Of a stretch of 64,000 nucleotides of DNA, positions 2,874 to 11,238 are shown piece after piece. The notes under the pieces were generated by a model. It made no database searches. It was not told the origin of the DNA and saw only the letters and a program-made list of their open reading frames with translations. The stretch is from NCBI GenBank assembly GCA_964247055.1, contig OZ176051.1, positions 10,292,001 through 10,356,000 on the forward strand, written 5' to 3'. Within the stretch, counting starts at the first letter, position 1. The number at the start of each line of letters is the position of its first letter. The stretch is from Paragordius varius. Lineage: Eukaryota; Animalia; Nematomorpha. The translations under genes and the position numbers were made by a program.

Positions 2874-5800
2874 ATGGATATCCAGAGGGAAACAGTAAAT
2901 ATTTTTCATGTCCCCAACGAAATTATAATTGATTGCTTATGCTCAGATATTTTAAGCGATAATGATATATTATCATTTGCTTCATCTTGTCATTTATACA
3001 ATAATCTAGTCAAACCATCTCAAAAATTATGGAAATTGAGATTTGTTAGAAGGTAATTAATTTGGATTACCTACTATAGATGGCCAAATGTAATTTTAAC
3101 TATTGTTGATGATTGGTTTGGTTGTTATAGGTCTCGTATATATTTTAACAAGAAATTCCGAGAACTCATAGCCAAATTGGCTTACGAACAATATTACGTA
3201 ATTATTTTTGTTATATTAGAAAAAAAATATATCATCCAAACAACTCACTCAATTTTATGTGTTAATGACAACTTCCGATAACGGATATCATTTTATTATT
3301 GATGAATTAACATCTCTAATATTTTGCACAGACAAATATCAAGAATTGACTCTAAAATATTATGCCGAAATAATCCTCAACTATATATCACAACATATAA
3401 CTCGAAGAGATTTGGACATATATTTACAATCAACTGAAAAAAATCTAGAAAAAGGTAGAAATTAATTTAATATGCAAATTTGTAATGCAATCAACCTCTT
3501 TCCCTTTATACTAATCTCATAAAATTAATTTAAAAAAATGCATTTTTTCCCAAAAATTAATATTTTTCTAAATATGCTTTGGAAAAATAACTAAATTTTG
3601 TTTTTTAATTATTTTTAGCGTATTATCAGGTTTTTAAAGTAGAGTTTACTTATATGATAATTTTAAAAAAAACCTTATAAACCAGATTGCCAGATGATTT
3701 TACAAGAACTCATTATTATTTGTCACTATTTTTTTGAAGAGATTATAATAGCTTTTTACCCTAAAAAATTGAAGCATTTTAAATATGCTATCATTAATTA
3801 GTATGATGAAAAGCCACACTTATCAAATCAAACTACAGGATTCACGTTCCAAAGAGTTTTGTGGCTAATATAAAGGGAAAGTCTATGTTTTAGAACTGAT
3901 CTTTTTTATTCGTAGCTAAACATGGTTTAAAGGCGAAAAAAGATAATTATTGAAAATATAGTTGCGGACAAGGAAGCCTACCCTACAAACTTTTTGTTTG
4001 ATGAGGACTTTATTTTAGTATAATAATTTATTGAAATGGGGTATCTGGAAGACATATTATGTGTAGTCATCAATTCATGGTGAGTGTTTTGATTAAATTA
4101 AGGTTAAGATATATCATATTAAGAGTGACAAAAGAATGAATGACAGACGATATTAAAAGGTCAATATCATTATCATAGACAATCTTTGCACATTTTAGGA
4201 CGCATTTATCGAAACCTGATTGTTGTTTTATAATTCACAAATAATCGATTTTAATAATAATTTATCTAGGTGTTAATCTTGTCCCAGAACGATCTTAACC
4301 GATTTACAAAAAGTCGGATAATAGATCACATTATAAAATTTGTTAAAGAAATATCATTATTTTTCCATCGTCTCTAAAATTAAGCATTGTCTATGAGGAC
4401 TGACCTTTTAGTAACGGCATTTATAGTTAATAAAATATTCTCTATTTATTCTTTCTATATAACCTTCACATAATCAATTATAAATTCTTTTATCCAAAAA
4501 TACAAAAATGAATATATTTGATCATCAATTATATGTCTACTAGATACACCACTCAATTAAGTATGATAATTTATTAAAAAACTTTTAAATACATCTTATT
4601 CGAATAAAAAGTTTTCTGGATTAGGCTTATTTTTCCCACCAACACTCTACATTGGACAGATAATTTTTTTGCCTTTAAACCATGTTTGTTGTTGTTGAGC
4701 TTGTAATCGATTATCCACCATTAGCGATTTTATAAGAAAACTTCCTCAACTTGGTCGTAATCTTTTTGATATAGTTTTTGCAGTGACATTTTGGAAAGTG
4801 ATAAAATTTTGTCTATCCAACAAATACGTGTTCGGCCTCTTCCTCTCTTATTTTTCCTAAACACCCTATTCTTGTCAGAAATCCCCGATTTATGTGTACA
4901 AAATAACCAACTGACAATAAATTAGACCATATCTAAAACACATTTACCCTTATTAAATTAGCCACGAAATCTCTTCAGTTTGGGAAACCAGGCTGCTCAA
5001 AAGGGTTAATCTTGTAGTTTGATTTGATATATTATCCACTCATCAAGTGACACTGTATTCCTACATTAGCCTTTTGTCAATAGTTCCAAAATTAAATGTG
5101 ATACAACAACACTCAAATTTCCTAATTTATTAGTGAGAGTGGCAATAATGGACTATCGATTGTTTTACACTTCCTTTTCATGCGATCGTGTGTTACTTTC
5201 AATCGAGACGCTTAACCGAATTTAAAATTCTTTTGACAATTATTATCGCTAAAATTAATGAAATTGACTAGTAGTCGTACTTCCCATATAATATTCTTTG
5301 ATGTTTTATTGGTGACCATTCATACAAAGTTTTTTTGATTGGATAATTCAAATTTAATCGAACTTGTTTGGGGCATTGTAGGTTTAAATTTGGTTTTATG
5401 TAGGATTCAATGATTTATTTAAATGCATACATATGGATGAATCCTGGGTTTTTAAAACATACTCATGCATTAGCCCACACACCAATGTATTTTTATTTAA
5501 AGTTATTTATTATTATTCTTTCCCAAATTATTCGACTATTGTTGTCAAATCGCCACTAATTTTAGTATTAAATGTTGACACCTTTCATCTATCGACAGTG
5601 TTGTTTCGTTCTTGTATTCTATATTTTGCTGTATAACGTTTATTGTTTTTGTGGTGTCCAGAATCGGTGGCATGGTGTGTATCTCAGCAAGCATTTTTCA
5701 TTTGATTTCGGTCCAAAGAGTTTGGTTTGCATTTTTAAGTTTTCTCCAGCATTTAATCTATAATCATATATTTTTTATGTTCCTTTAATGAGTTTTTTAC

Positions 5801-8800
5801 TATATATACTTGTTTACGACCTTGTCAAACAGGTGAACTCTCTCTAAAATGTACATACATATAAAATTTCATATTATTATCATTAGCGTACCAGGTAAAG
5901 CGCAAAGTGGGTACATTTTAACATTGTAACGGTGGGTATATTAAGTGGAAATTTTGTGCAAAGTAGCTTTAAAATTGGGTTTTTTTAGGCGCTAAAAAAT
6001 AAACTTATTTAAATTATTTTACCAATTTTTGCTGGTCCATTTAAAAAAAGCATATCTATATCGCCAATTTTCGAGATAGGTTGCACATCTGCATTTAATA
6101 GATTATTCAGTTTGATAAAAAGATTCACTATTCGAAGCGCATTGTTTATCGAAGCTGTTGATTAGTATTTTATCACAATGCAGCATTCTTTATAATTATA
6201 TATCACGCGCACTTTAAAAGCAAGTTGGTCCTTAAACATTTCTGGGATTTGAACGTTGGTTTTTGAACACTTAAAGTTGGTCCTTGAACATTTTAAGCTG
6301 GTATAACTTATTGTCTTGTTTTCTTTTATTATCATTCATTTATTTTATCATTGTTAACCTATTTTCTTTATTTATCATAAACTTTAAAGATAATATCATT
6401 TTTAATCATTCAGAAACCGTATATCTTTATTATCATAAAATATATTATATTAATTAGATATTAACATGTAAATTGAAAATATACAAGTTTTCTGATATAA
6501 TAATTACAATTTTTGTTAGAAATATTTAGTTAATAATTATGTTAAATTGGCGAAAATTTGTTTGAAACAAAAAATTAGTTTTTGAGTAAAAAAATTTATT
6601 TTTAAATGAATAATATAAAAAATAAAGGAAATTAGGTTAAAAAAATAAAATAAAAAACAAAAGAAAATATATGGCTAAATTTAAAAATTTAAGGGCCAAG
6701 TCTAAATAAAATTAACCTAATTGATAATAAAGACACTTTTTTGAGCATGCTCTTAAACTTCCATTTGTTAAAAAAATTTATACTTTTTCTTACAAAAATT
6801 TAATGTTTTATCACGTATCTAATTTAATTTTTTTGGTAACTTATTTTTAAAAAGTTATTTTGTACTATATTTTAGGAATTTATTTATTCAATTTATGGCA
6901 TCAACCTAAACTCTTGCTAACGAATGAATTGGAAAAAACCGCACAAACTTTGGACGAAATGGCTAATGATATATGGAATGAATTAGTATGTGAATCATCA
7001 AATAATATAAAATTATTTGCAAAATATTGCAGTGATAGTATCTCACTTCATTCAGGCACTGATAAGAAGAAAACTCTGATAACTAGATCCGGTAAAAATA
7101 TTTTTTTAATTATTGGACAGAACATGACTCTTTTTTTTTAAACTGTTTAGATACTATAACGGGTAGAAATACGGTTTTAAAAACGTGTTTTTTTTTCAGT
7201 TTTTATAAGAGTTTATCTTGTTTTTGATTAATAAAAGTTCAGTTTTTTAGATAATCAAAATAAAATTTAATAAAAATATTTTGAGCTTGCTCATTTTAAA
7301 GTAGCTATCTCTATTAACAAAAATTAGACAATTTATCTTATTGATAAAAGAACGGCATAGACTTAACTTTTTTAGCGCAACAAAATGATGTTGAACCGAA
7401 AATAATTTTAATTTTTATGAAATAAAATATTTTATTTATATTTTTATATAATCCATATAGAATATCTTAATTTACGCCTTACCAATAAAATATCCGCATT
7501 GACCAGTGAAATGGAAATAAGCATACTTAAGGCGATTGGCAATTATTTATTTTTACAAAAAGGATTTACAGGAAATTTGGATCATGATCAGTGGATTGAA
7601 AATACTTTCTTAAATATTGTAAGATTTATTTGCTGAATTTTGCTTTAATATATTTGATATTCTTCGCCTTTTAATTTTATATCAGTAAATAACTATTTTA
7701 TTAGTAATTATGCTGGAAAGTTGTTAATTATTGCCAAATAGTAAATACAACTGTTAAAAGGGTTATTATCATACGTTGTTTAAGTTTGCGGATGATGAGG
7801 CAGGAATGCTGATTGATATTTCCGGGTTATCTAGATTTTTAGTCTTTTACTTCTCCCGTCTTCTCCTTCGGCCGACCAATCCATGCGATTCTTTAATTGA
7901 TCAGCATGTTTGCGGATAATTTTGCCATTGTCGTTGACATTGTACGATAACCCGATTTGTCCCTCCCTCCAACCAGTACACAATTCATTCTTCATATATA
8001 CCTTTTGCCCCTTTTCAAACTCCTGCGGAATGTCGGGAGTATCCATAAATTCGTTGGGTTTCGTTTTCATCCATGTAAATGGGCTTTGCATACTTCTTTT
8101 TAGAAACAAATGCGCGGGGGTCTTGGCGCGTTATATCAAGAATGAATTGTGTACTGGTTGGAGGGAGGGACAAATCGTCGACAGAACGGGACGGTTATCG
8201 TACAATGTCAACGACAATGGCAAAATTATCCGCAAACATGCTGATCAATTAAATATCGCATGGATTGGTCGGCCGAAGGAGAAGACGGGAGAAGTGAGGA
8301 AAAGACTAAAAATCTAGATAACCTGGAAATATCAATCAGCATTCCTAACTCATCATCCGCAAACTTAAACAACGTATGATAATAACCCTTTTAACAACAA
8401 CAAAAGACAATAATATTGGCATATAGTTATTTTTTTCACTTTTTACTATTATTAGATAGGCACAACGCAATATAGGCCAATAATATAATTCTCTTTGCGA
8501 TTTGGCAATAATTAATAACTTTCCAGCAATAACTTGCTATTACTCTATTTTCAGTCCATATGCGAATAACCGAAAATTATATAATGTTTTTGTTTAGGTT
8601 CTAACCAAAAAAACTGGACTTCCTATATCTCTTTGCGTTCTTTACGTATTATTGGCCCAAAGATTGGGCATATCGGATAATTTGAAAATATTGGATTTCC
8701 CTAAACGTGTTATATTACGTTATACCCCTCATGAAAATAACTCGTATGTATCATCTTTTAAGTGAGTTAGTTGTTTTACAATCAAATATGCAGTAAAACT

Positions 8801-11238
8801 TAAAATCACACGGACAAAACGTAAAATATAAAGACAAATATATTTTTCTAAATGACAACCATGCTTTTTAAATCTTGATTTATTGAATATAACTCATTGT
8901 TTTAAACAACAAAGTATGAAAAGATAATCATGGGTAACACAATCAATTATATATATTATAATTGTAAATATATCATTTATGAGAAAAATTAAAATTTAAA
9001 AAACTATGGTTTTCTTTTAGAAAAAAATATTTGTCTTTGTATTTTTACGTTTTGTCCGTATAATTTCAGTTTTTACTGTATTATTATTTTGTTTTTTAGT
9101 TTTTTTTTAATTTATTTTGAATATGATAATAAAAATAAGCGAAATTTTCGCTGTTTATACATAAATATTTCATTAAATATTTTAGCGATAATCGAAATTC
9201 TGATACTATATTTATTGACCCATACAACGGGGGTTCCTTCATGAATTACAATGAATTGCAAGTCGCACCATTCGTCGATCATATATTGGAGGAAAATGAT
9301 TTTCCTATCGCTGATACCAAAATGGTATATAAATTTGTGTTTCAATAAATTTTTGTTGTAAACATATAAATAATAAATTTAATTATGATTATTATTTTGT
9401 GTTTGTATAAATTCCATTTTTTACCATTTATTTTTGTATTTTAATTATTATTTAGACTTTTAATTAAATATTCCATTTTTTATTATTAGTGAGATTAATA
9501 AATTACTACAGATATATGGATATATCGTTCGGTTATGGTTAAAATATTTATGTTGAAACTTTATTGCTAAAATTTTATTATAGGCTGTTCGATTTATAAA
9601 AAATAATTTTATGTTTACAATGCTGCAAATGATATTAGGTTTTGCAACGGATGGCCCGCAATTTGATAGCCAATTTGTACGTTAACACGGAAGATATGAT
9701 CACATTTTCCCGTTTTCGTTACGCAGTTGAATGTTCACTCATTTTAGATCCTGAAGATTTTGATATGCGTTTCTTGCTTTTAAAATTGTACCTTTACCTC
9801 GATATAGAATTTGAAAAGGTAAAATATTTTTCGCACTATTGTTAATTACTTTTATAATTCTTATAATTTAATTTTTGATTCCGTAAAAGGTCATAGAAAA
9901 TTTGAATGATTTAGCTGGCCGTGGATTGCATAAAGCTTTATGTCAAACGTTGTTAACTGAAGCTAAACACAAAATGTTGTTAGATGAAAATAGAACAGTA
10001 ATATTATAATTTATACAAATAATTTTTTGTTTGAAAGAATTGGTGTTTTTGTAAAGGAAGGAGAATACCCCTAAAATTAAAGGTATGAAACGATTAACTG
10101 GTACAAAAACTCACTCATCAAGTTTAAATTTTTCAAAATTTAATAAAAAAATTTAAATTTCAAACATATAGCTTTTTATTGGAACAGCTAAATTTAATTT
10201 TGGTTGCATTTTTTGATTTTTCAACAAAAAAATAATTTCAAATATTTGGTTAAAATACTAATCTAATTAACACAATGAATTGAGCTTATATTTATAAGTA
10301 CGGTGTCTTCCAATTTTTAGATTACCTGTGTTTAAATATTTCACCCATATTTAATTTTACTTTTTAATCACCAAGTTAGAAATTGTTAAACGAAGTGATC
10401 CCATAAACTGCAACGTTTTGTACAGTGTTGGTATGATTATGCAACATAAACGGTAGATTGTTCTAAAATTTAATGATTTATTGGATAATTTTGATAAAAT
10501 AACTTTATGTTTTAGATATCAATATACCTGTGTAATAATATCGTGGGATCCGGTTTGTAAAGCTTCTGATGAATGGAAACTCCAAATGGGTGTTGCTAAT
10601 CTTGAACAAAATGGTGAATATCAACCATTTTATCATGTATTGGTTCAGGATGGTACTAATCGATACGCAGCTCAGGGTAGGCCTCCTGTATAATTTTGTA
10701 GATTTAATCACAATATGCATTTTAATGGAGCTTATTACAAACTATAGTAGGGTCATTTGCAAACAGGAATGTATGGAAAAAACGAAAGGAAATAATTGTT
10801 TATTCAATATTTTGTTGTTTTATCCATATGCTACTGAACCAAAATTACCCAACTAAGCAACCATTTAAATACTTTATTATGAAGTTTTAAACTATTAAGA
10901 TAAATTGAAAGATTGATAACTAGAAAACATTAAGTGATTCTATATTACGTATGATCAGTATGACTTTTCTAAAAAAATATTTTTATATTTATTATATATA
11001 TTCTTTCATTTCATTTTTTGGCACAGAAAATTTGACTTACTGTCCGAATCCTATATTTGTTGATCATAATCAAATCGGAATGTATTTTGAAGAGTTCATG
11101 GGAACCCATTTTGTCGCCAATCCTCGAAAAAGAGAGGAATATCCTGAAGATTATGAATATCTCTCTCATATAGTTCAAAAACTTTATCGCCCTGTTGATA
11201 TGAAAAATAGAATATATACCCTAATAAATGAAATTTAG
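2874..11238 (+). CDS. FBXO21: F-box only protein 21 (F-box + transglutaminase-like core + YccV/HspQ-like C-terminal domain), about 13 exons
   Basis: Exons 2874-3052, 3080-3197, 3220-3454, 6876-7091, 7461-7618, 8598-8743, 9186-9324, 9639-9818, 9890-9997, 10061-10082 (uncertain), 10380-10452, 10516-10676 and 11027-11238 join in frame. Motifs follow FBXO21 order: F-box..LWKLRFVRRWP, VLTKKTGLPISLCVLY, IFIDPYNGG, VLQRMARNL, YSVGMIMQHKRYQYTCVIISWDP, QPFYHVLVQDGTNRYAAQENL, IGMYFEEFMGTHF. Confidence 0.95.
4750..5850 (-). mobile_element. Decayed RTE-like LINE fragment in FBXO21 intron 3
   Basis: The minus strand near 4770-4870 reads ..KIRGRGRTRICWIDKILSLSKMSL, resembling the RTE C-terminal GKRxRGRPRxRWxD motif. 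Upstream sequence is stop-riddled. Boundaries are approximate. Confidence 0.45.
7752..8396. mobile_element. Palindromic non-autonomous element with TGT...ACA ends and a 5-bp TSD, built from a Gypsy-type integrase 3' end (Ginger-like)
   Basis: Inverted arms 7752-7998 and 8132-8396 flank a 133-bp spacer. ACAAC sits on both sides (7747-7751, 8397-8401). The minus strand encodes TPAHLFLKR..FEKGQKVYMKNELCTGWREGQI..GRLSYNVNDNGKIIRKHADQLK, a typical Gypsy integrase C-terminus. Confidence 0.8.
8791..9078. mobile_element. Tc1/mariner-like MITE (family D), FBXO21 intron 6
   Basis: About 50-bp TIRs (CAGTAAAA..acggacaaaacgtaaaa / ttttacgttttgtccgt..TTTTACTG) with TA at the right flank. Related copies lie at 37157-37434 and 47990-48045. 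Confidence 0.7.

Follow-up and report, generated by a model that had tools for sequence, protein, structure and literature searches.

A 645-bp palindromic element occupies positions 7752-8396 of a 64,000-nucleotide stretch of the genome of the nematomorph Paragordius varius (GenBank assembly GCA_964247055.1, contig OZ176051.1, positions 10,292,001 to 10,356,000 of the forward strand; G000:C2:10292001-10356000), hereafter the window. The assembly comprises 110.6 Mb in 44 contigs, with a GC content of about 27% throughout. We conclude, with a probability of roughly 0.75, that this element, which is dead and present in a single copy, is an aberrant cDNA of an ordinary Ty3/Gypsy-type long terminal repeat (LTR) retrotransposon, inserted by the integrase of its own family into a miniature inverted-repeat transposable element (MITE) that lies in an intron of an FBXO21-like gene. 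An original prediction, made from the letters of the window, had described the palindrome and derived it from two right ends of an LTR-less, Ginger-like DNA transposon; the observation is partly confirmed and the interpretation partly supported by the present analysis, in which only natural copies were compared.

Anatomy of the element

The element starts with TGTTAAAAGGG and ends with CCCTTTTAACA (termini TGTT...AACA), and the pentanucleotide ACAAC stands directly outside both ends, at 7747-7751 and 8397-8401. Four collinear inverted-repeat blocks of 41-100 nt, 96-100% complementary, make up its paired part; when the arms are aligned in coding orientation, 241 of the 246 aligned bases match, with 5 mismatches and 3 indels. 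The length, the inverted arms, the TGT/ACA termini and the flanking ACAAC duplication reported in the original prediction are all borne out, as are the C-terminal part of a Gypsy-type integrase that the translations reveal on both arms and the GCGCG at the fold-back centre. The arms are of unequal length (380 nt on the left, 265 nt on the right), leaving 7999-8131 unpaired. Private deletions of 15 nt and 4 nt are present in the left arm, of which the stretch 7999-8123 has no counterpart in the right arm, and a private deletion of 1 nt is present in the right arm. The features of the element and its immediate borders are as follows.

7747-7751, unstranded: left copy of the duplicated target site, ACAAC; a single ACAAC is found at the aligned point in six empty MITE paralogs
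7752-7775, + strand: first 24 nt of the family LTR (U3 start, TGTTAAAAGGG...), outward-facing; 24/24 against the closest subfamily and 23/24 against the intact copy L036
7776-8123, - strand: left arm, integrase C-terminal coding sequence, corresponding to positions 4058 down to 3692 of the full-length copy L059
8124-8131, unstranded: central filler TGGCGCG(T), missing at that position in 26/26 family copies
8132-8372, + strand: right arm, the same integrase coding sequence, here in sense orientation, corresponding to L059 3816 to 4058 at 96.5% identity
8373-8396, - strand: inverted LTR nt 24 to 1, ending ...CCCTTTTAACA, identified by its match to the LTR start
8397-8401, unstranded: right copy of the duplicated target site, ACAAC, from the same MITE paralog alignment

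Mapped on L059, the element thus reads LTR 1-24, antisense 4058-3692, eight filler bases, sense 3816-4058 and inverted LTR 24-1. The first 7 nt of the filler, TGGCGCG, are identical to the first 7 nt of the primer-binding site (PBS) of the family, and this 7-mer occurs nowhere else in the 4.6-kb element on either strand. The LTR content is limited to the two 24-nt inverted stubs, the PBS is reduced to the 7-nt stub, and no polypurine tract (PPT) is present; the two direct LTRs with PBS and PPT that another cycle of retrotransposition needs are therefore lacking. The original prediction had stated that the element contained neither a PPT nor an LTR, the first part of which holds, whereas the second overlooked that the last 24 nt of each arm are inverted LTR nt 1-24.

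The parent retrotransposon family

A search of the genome with the left arm returned 26 copies: 12 are decayed (89-92% identity), and among the other 14, at about 90% identity, 7 carry an unbroken reading frame across the stretch that was fetched. The arms are 90-96% identical to family copies with the anatomy of an LTR retrotransposon; the closest relatives are about 4.6 kb long, and their LTR pairs are 98-100% identical. In the intact copy L036, two 305-bp direct LTRs (100% identical, starting with TGTT and ending with GTCA) are bracketed by the target-site duplication (TSD) TAAAA; a PBS-like sequence, TGGCGCGGCTATTCGAGG, lies two bases 3' of the 5' LTR, and a purine run, AAGGAAGAAGG, the PPT, immediately precedes the 3' LTR. 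A single open reading frame (ORF) of 1327 amino acids encodes, in this order, protease, reverse transcriptase (RVT_1), RNase H, a zinc-binding domain and the integrase core (rve). In a related copy, the zinc-binding motif, the core and the same integrase C-terminal stretch that is carried by the arms are all in one frame. Two other normal copies are flanked by the TSDs AGGGG and GACCG. The parent is an ordinary small Ty3/Gypsy-type LTR retrotransposon and not a Ginger-like DNA transposon: the family encodes protease, reverse transcriptase, RNase H and integrase and has LTRs, a PBS and a PPT.

Two further observations concern the intact members of the family. A 54-bp tandem duplication within the sequence that codes for the integrase tail (L036:7208-7315) marks an intact "C-variant" subfamily, and because of this duplication its copies match the window arm only to query position 296. 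Directly upstream of one intact family copy lies a long array of 35-bp tandem repeats (L035:1-3000; G000:C2:8553500-8556500).

U3-derived ends and an unusual joint

The outer 24 nt of each arm correspond to LTR nt 1-24 (24/24 in the closest subfamily) and are inverted relative to the adjoining integrase tail. In normal copies this 24-mer shares the orientation of the integrase and is located about 190 nt further downstream, and the integrase frame continues for these roughly 190 nt beyond the point where the arm ends, up to the PPT. Two other accounts of the termini were ruled out on these grounds: the terminus is not the natural end of an integrase ORF, given that parent frames read past that point, and the terminal 24 nt are not a diverged integrase tail, matching the parental coding sequence at only about 18 of 26 positions as against 24/24 for the inverted LTR start. 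The stop codon that the original prediction placed about 18 nt from the terminus and took for the end of the reading frame is part of the LTR-derived piece. Both termini of the element are U3 ends, as defined by PPT cleavage and priming, so that the configuration is U3/U3, with LTR-start ("left") sequences on both sides, rather than the right-end/right-end arrangement that had been proposed.

At the joint between integrase tail and inverted LTR, a 12-nt stretch, ATGATAATAACC, is found that occurs once in the integrase tail and whose complement is at LTR nt 10-21. The joint is identical to the base in both arms. Comparison of the differences between the arms with the 26 family copies revealed that, at all sites but one, one arm carries a variant of its own and the other conforms to the family; the two arms thus started out identical, and about 2% divergence and three indels have accumulated since. 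Together, the shared joint and the former identity of the arms favour a single molecule copied on itself or on its sister strand over the union of two independent fragments, and the common, unique joint with once-identical arms is what is expected of a snap-back product, in which both arms come from one molecule.

When the diagnostic 34-nt joint was searched for across the genome with up to 3 mismatches allowed, only the two arms at this locus were recovered. The unit has therefore not been multiplied and is not a nascent MITE, as had been suggested, and, having no promoter, PBS or PPT, it is unable to be copied again as a retrotransposon.

These data bear directly on the derivation from an LTR-less DNA transposon that resembles Ginger and has a Gypsy-related integrase, in which two right ends would have been joined to form a MITE in the making. 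Ginger1 and Ginger2 resemble the window element in their Gypsy-related integrase, TGT..ACA termini, short TSD and terminal inverted repeats, and the TGT..ACA ends and 5-bp duplication seen here fit Ginger (4-6 bp TSD) as well as they fit LTR elements, so that they do not discriminate between the two. Ginger elements, however, have neither reverse transcriptase nor LTRs and move as DNA, whereas the family of the window fragment has reverse transcriptase, LTRs, a PBS and a PPT, and the fragment itself is single-copy. All 26 relatives found (26/26) belong to an LTR retrotransposon with reverse transcriptase, RNase H, PBS and PPT, and relatives bounded by terminal inverted repeats and devoid of reverse transcriptase were not among them. 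With termini that are LTR starts, a parental integrase frame that continues beyond them and a joint confined to one locus, we regard a Ginger-like origin as close to untenable. The original prediction had itself named an ordinary LTR element as the parent that would speak against it, and the parent is such an element, with the 305-bp LTRs, PBS, PPT, reverse transcriptase and RNase H recovered by the arm search, though the ACAAC match is not coincidental.

Insertion into a MITE

The element interrupts a copy of a MITE of about 170 bp with terminal inverted repeats of about 40 bp, which is present in the genome in very many copies (e.g., the paralog at L055:1466-1623). The two parts of this host MITE in the window are the following.

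7711-7746, unstranded: left part of the host MITE (its terminal inverted repeat), with dozens of 95% matches in the genome
8402-8531, unstranded: remainder of the host MITE, from the alignment with MITE paralogs

When six uninterrupted MITE paralogs were aligned with the window flanks, the flanks fell on one continuous sequence and overlapped at five invariant columns, ACAAC; the target of the element was therefore a MITE copy, of which 5 bp were duplicated, and, since each of the six paralogs carries a single ACAAC at that point, this duplication is a genuine TSD and not a coincidental match. The outer inverted repeat at 7711-7750 and 8489-8528 was considered as part of a larger palindrome, which was ruled out because it is the terminal inverted repeat pair of the host MITE. 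Most MITE copies have further conserved outer bases, GTAAGTATACAT..., that are missing from the window copy.

Integrase-type insertion is indicated by the presence of LTR base 1 at both ends and by a 5-bp TSD, as in three normal and four other aberrant copies of the family. In this respect the view is upheld that a preformed palindrome was inserted whole, by means of two like ends and with a normal 5-bp TSD. A post-insertion origin, either from two nested or adjacent insertions in opposite orientations or from a single truncated copy that host replication or repair later duplicated in inverted form, has some precedent in that the family does form clusters of rearranged copies (L031, L063). It is nevertheless very unlikely here, considering that a single TSD brackets the whole unit, that the host MITE resumes exactly after it, and that a later fold-back would have taken in neighbouring host DNA or stopped at some chance position instead of twice at LTR base 1.

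Other aberrant insertions of the family

A genome-wide search with the LTR start yielded 60 matches, including about 14 same-orientation pairs at full-length spacing and several inward-facing inverted pairs. Beyond the window element, three further insertions with U3 at both ends were identified, together with one copy that is inverted internally; all four have a 5-bp TSD.

The first, L057:1005-1624 (G000:C1:14936004-14936623; TSD GACAC), consists of an LTR, AC plus 8 nt of the PBS, 6 unexplained bases and an inverted LTR; its palindrome arms of 299 nt are 100% identical, and the joint is off-centre. It looks like a doubled and integrated plus-strand strong-stop DNA. A PBS stub is thus present at the centre of the L057 palindrome as well as in the window filler (8124-8130). 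The second, L058:1070-3212 (G000:C1:9459769-9461911; 2143 bp; TSD GCCGT), has LTR 1-45 at its start and inverted LTR 66-1 at its end, enclosing one antisense and two sense pieces with junction microhomologies of 8-10 nt. The third, L062:2250-4501 continued in L015:1-2318 (G000:C10:~2578754-2582882; TSD ATAAG), is near full-length, with LTR 1-11 fused to the PBS at the 5' end; it contains the entire coding region and the PPT, after which come TG, eight T and an inverted U3-R in place of the 3' LTR. This copy shows that 11 nt of U3 are enough for integration.

In the internally inverted copy, L021:812-3307 continued in L064:1-380 (G000:C1:1832435-1835279; TSD ATCAT), the U3 and U5 tips are normal and the interior is inverted, in the order U3-R, A21, antisense U3 120-1, PPT and pol, with the polarity switch at A21. 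From the poly(A)/poly(T) tracts at two of these joints, the polyadenylation site can be placed near LTR nt 280-285, with A21 marking it near nt 285; the tracts also show that RNA-derived 3' ends took part. The theme common to the aberrant copies is a strand that starts from LTR base 1 and turns to the opposite sense after a short microhomology.

Two additional loci are recorded here in their own right. L031:3865-10000 with L063:1-1487 (G000:C8:2953865-2961487) forms a tangled cluster of several family copies in both orientations, one sense-to-antisense joint of which, at element position ~4075, is located a few bases from the joint of the window element. In an unrelated family that does not match the present one, L065:680-2400 (G000:C2:~14402680-14404400) is a 1.7-kb unit with 342-bp inverted terminal repeats of 99.4% identity.

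Proposed origin of the palindrome

The end product can be accommodated by a short series of strand switches during reverse transcription. Plus-strand DNA would be primed at the PPT and copy 24 nt of U3, whereupon its 3' end would re-anneal at the 12-nt complementary stretch, some 190 nt 5' of the PPT, in a plus-sense template provided by RNA remnants or by the co-packaged RNA, and be extended in antisense for about 370 nt. After 7-8 extra bases, which equal the start of the PBS, polarity would be reversed again, the strand now copying itself or its sister strand to its own 5' end. The resulting palindromic duplex with two identical U3 ends may then have been joined to the target by integrase with the usual 5-bp stagger. 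After insertion, the arms would have decayed independently, and nothing suggests further movement.

Each of these steps is made plausible by published work (PMC6088434, PMC1950507, PMC9278108, PMC8487063). Self-priming of strong-stop DNA has been reviewed as a dead-end side reaction of retroviral reverse transcription (PMC6088434), template switching in reverse transcription yields integrated complex LTR elements (Sabot & Schulman 2007, PMC1950507), HIV-1 proviruses with inversions are on record (PMC9278108), and Ty1 integrase gives concerted-integration products from U3-only donors and prefers U3 over U5 (PMC8487063).

Several points weigh against this origin. The anatomy and the TSD were observed directly, whereas what kind of strand switches took place, and in which order, is reconstructed from the end product only. 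The crossover lies 3 nt outside the 12-nt microhomology and is accompanied by one extra base; the switch was therefore not cleanly guided by homology. A pure snap-back would produce a hairpin with one open end, the conversion of which into a two-ended duplex is left unexplained; no specific priming event could be assigned to the 7-nt PBS-like filler, which may be due to chance; and no parent copy closer than 92-96% was found in the assembly.

An assembly error is also to be considered, in which the contig would have incorporated a long read that is a fold-back chimera, as palindromes are a known type of chimera in long-read data and the present analysis is of assembled sequence. Such an artefact is extremely unlikely given that the host MITE is continuous across the two sides, with 5 bp duplicated exactly, that the ends of the palindrome match the LTR terminus to the base, that the arms differ by 5 substitutions and 3 indels, and that palindromic or inverted-end copies with TSDs of their own are present at four other loci.

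A different course of events would have two truncated cDNA fragments, each with one U3 end, co-inserted by one integrase complex, with their inner ends joined by host end-joining to leave the asymmetric centre and the filler. The unequal arms (380 versus 265 nt) and the 7-8 filler bases are as expected from end-joining, the similarly off-centre joint of L057 with its 6 unexplained bases fits as well, two separate short donors are routinely integrated in concert in vitro (PMC8487063), and no hairpin has to be opened. Two independent donors, however, would have required the same error twice, as the identical joint between integrase tail and inverted U3, with its 3 off-homology bases and extra base, is present in both arms, and the differences between the arms are, at all but one site, private mutations and not polymorphisms of the family. 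On balance, we consider co-insertion of two fragments, the main rival, unlikely and prefer a single molecule that twice reversed polarity before integration.

Other mechanisms were tried and rejected. Autointegration was ruled out by the odd joint at LTR nt 24 instead of the LTR tip, and homologous inversion across the 12-nt inverted repeats as sole cause by a joint 3 nt outside the repeat with an extra base. Mutual priming of two strong-stop DNAs via a palindromic GCGC/CGCG core was ruled out by the asymmetric centres of both the window element and L057. For tRNA priming at a pseudo-PBS beside the fold-back point, the nearest candidates are at least 2 nt off the observed junction.

Comparison with known systems

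Twin priming of L1 elements also produces an inverted segment with junction microhomology and an ordinary TSD, made during insertion by target-primed reverse transcription at the chromosome. The window element shares the inverted retroelement segment, the microhomology and the normal TSD but differs in that its rearrangement most likely took place in the particle, prior to insertion mediated by integrase.

Complex LTR and retroviral insertions (PMC1950507, PMC9278108) are likewise abnormal cDNAs of a single round, inserted by integrase with a normal TSD and with microhomology at the switch points; in contrast to these, the window element is characterized by polarity switches, a palindrome, U3 at both ends and 24 nt of LTR, not by extra LTRs or internal deletions. 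The self-priming of strong-stop DNA (PMC6088434) is similar in that a nascent strand folds back and copies itself into a hairpin-type product, but the described cases involve minus-strand DNA in vitro that was not integrated, whereas the window element starts at the PPT and reached the genome. Concerted integration of U3/U3 donors by Ty1 integrase in vitro (PMC8487063) agrees with the present case in that two identical U3 ends suffice; those donors are oligonucleotides in a test tube, and here the insertions are natural genomic ones, in one of which (L062) an end has no more than 11 nt of U3. Among the papers searched, no previously described palindromic LTR-element insertion of the U3/U3 type was found, which is no proof of absence.

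The host gene

The exons of the host gene were searched singly, with the following results.

7475-7621, + strand: probable upstream exon piece of an FBXO21-like gene (Transglut_core2 model positions 13-59, E 0.13, weak alone), in the open stretch 7421-7633
8598-8762, + strand: downstream exon of the FBXO21-like gene (Transglut_core2 model positions 59-111, E 5e-11)
10514-10675, + strand: YccV-like exon, further downstream

The two Transglut_core2 pieces abut at model position 59, and the combination of Transglut_core2 with a YccV-like domain is the FBXO21-type domain pair, which supports the intronic position given for the element in the original prediction, though not the intron number (5) stated there. 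The intron spans 7622-8597 of the window (~975 bp), of which the MITE accounts for ~170 bp and the palindrome with its TSD for 650 bp; before these two insertions, the intron was probably shorter than 160 bp, in a genome known for introns that are very short.

Folded as RNA, the element has an energy of -459.9 kcal/mol compared with -161 kcal/mol for shuffled sequences, in agreement with the long hairpin that had been anticipated for the transcript, if it is transcribed.

Implications

Taken as a single locus, the element is the fossil of a copying accident and gives no sign of function; its value is that of natural evidence. The window element is one of several polarity-switch products of an error-prone, otherwise normal family. 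Together with its four sister cases, it documents three things: reversal of polarity by a plus strand that was primed at the PPT and moves onto a plus-sense template is frequent (at least 5 insertions against about 14 full-length copies); two U3 ends are acceptable to the family integrase in vivo, even when only 11-24 nt of LTR are present; and such aberrant products land in genes. For annotators, the element carries a warning: ends resembling terminal inverted repeats, combined with a TSD and integrase coding sequence, can mimic a Ginger-type DNA transposon.

Mu killer, an inverted duplication of a DNA transposon, yields a hairpin RNA. The window element is comparable in being an inverted duplication of part of an active transposon at a place where host transcription could read through it, and is unlike Mu killer in that the latter derives from a DNA transposon. 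Intact copies with identical LTRs persist in the family, whose integrase region matches the arms at 90-96% identity, and a hairpin transcribed from the locus could feed RNA silencing of this active family. That the palindrome is in fact transcribed with the FBXO21-like gene into a double-stranded RNA hairpin of about 250 bp and acts, in the manner of Mu killer, as a source of small RNAs that silence the family in trans is a speculative and distinctly improbable proposal. If it were true, recurrent polarity-switch errors would provide a route by which the host may acquire silencers of the family.

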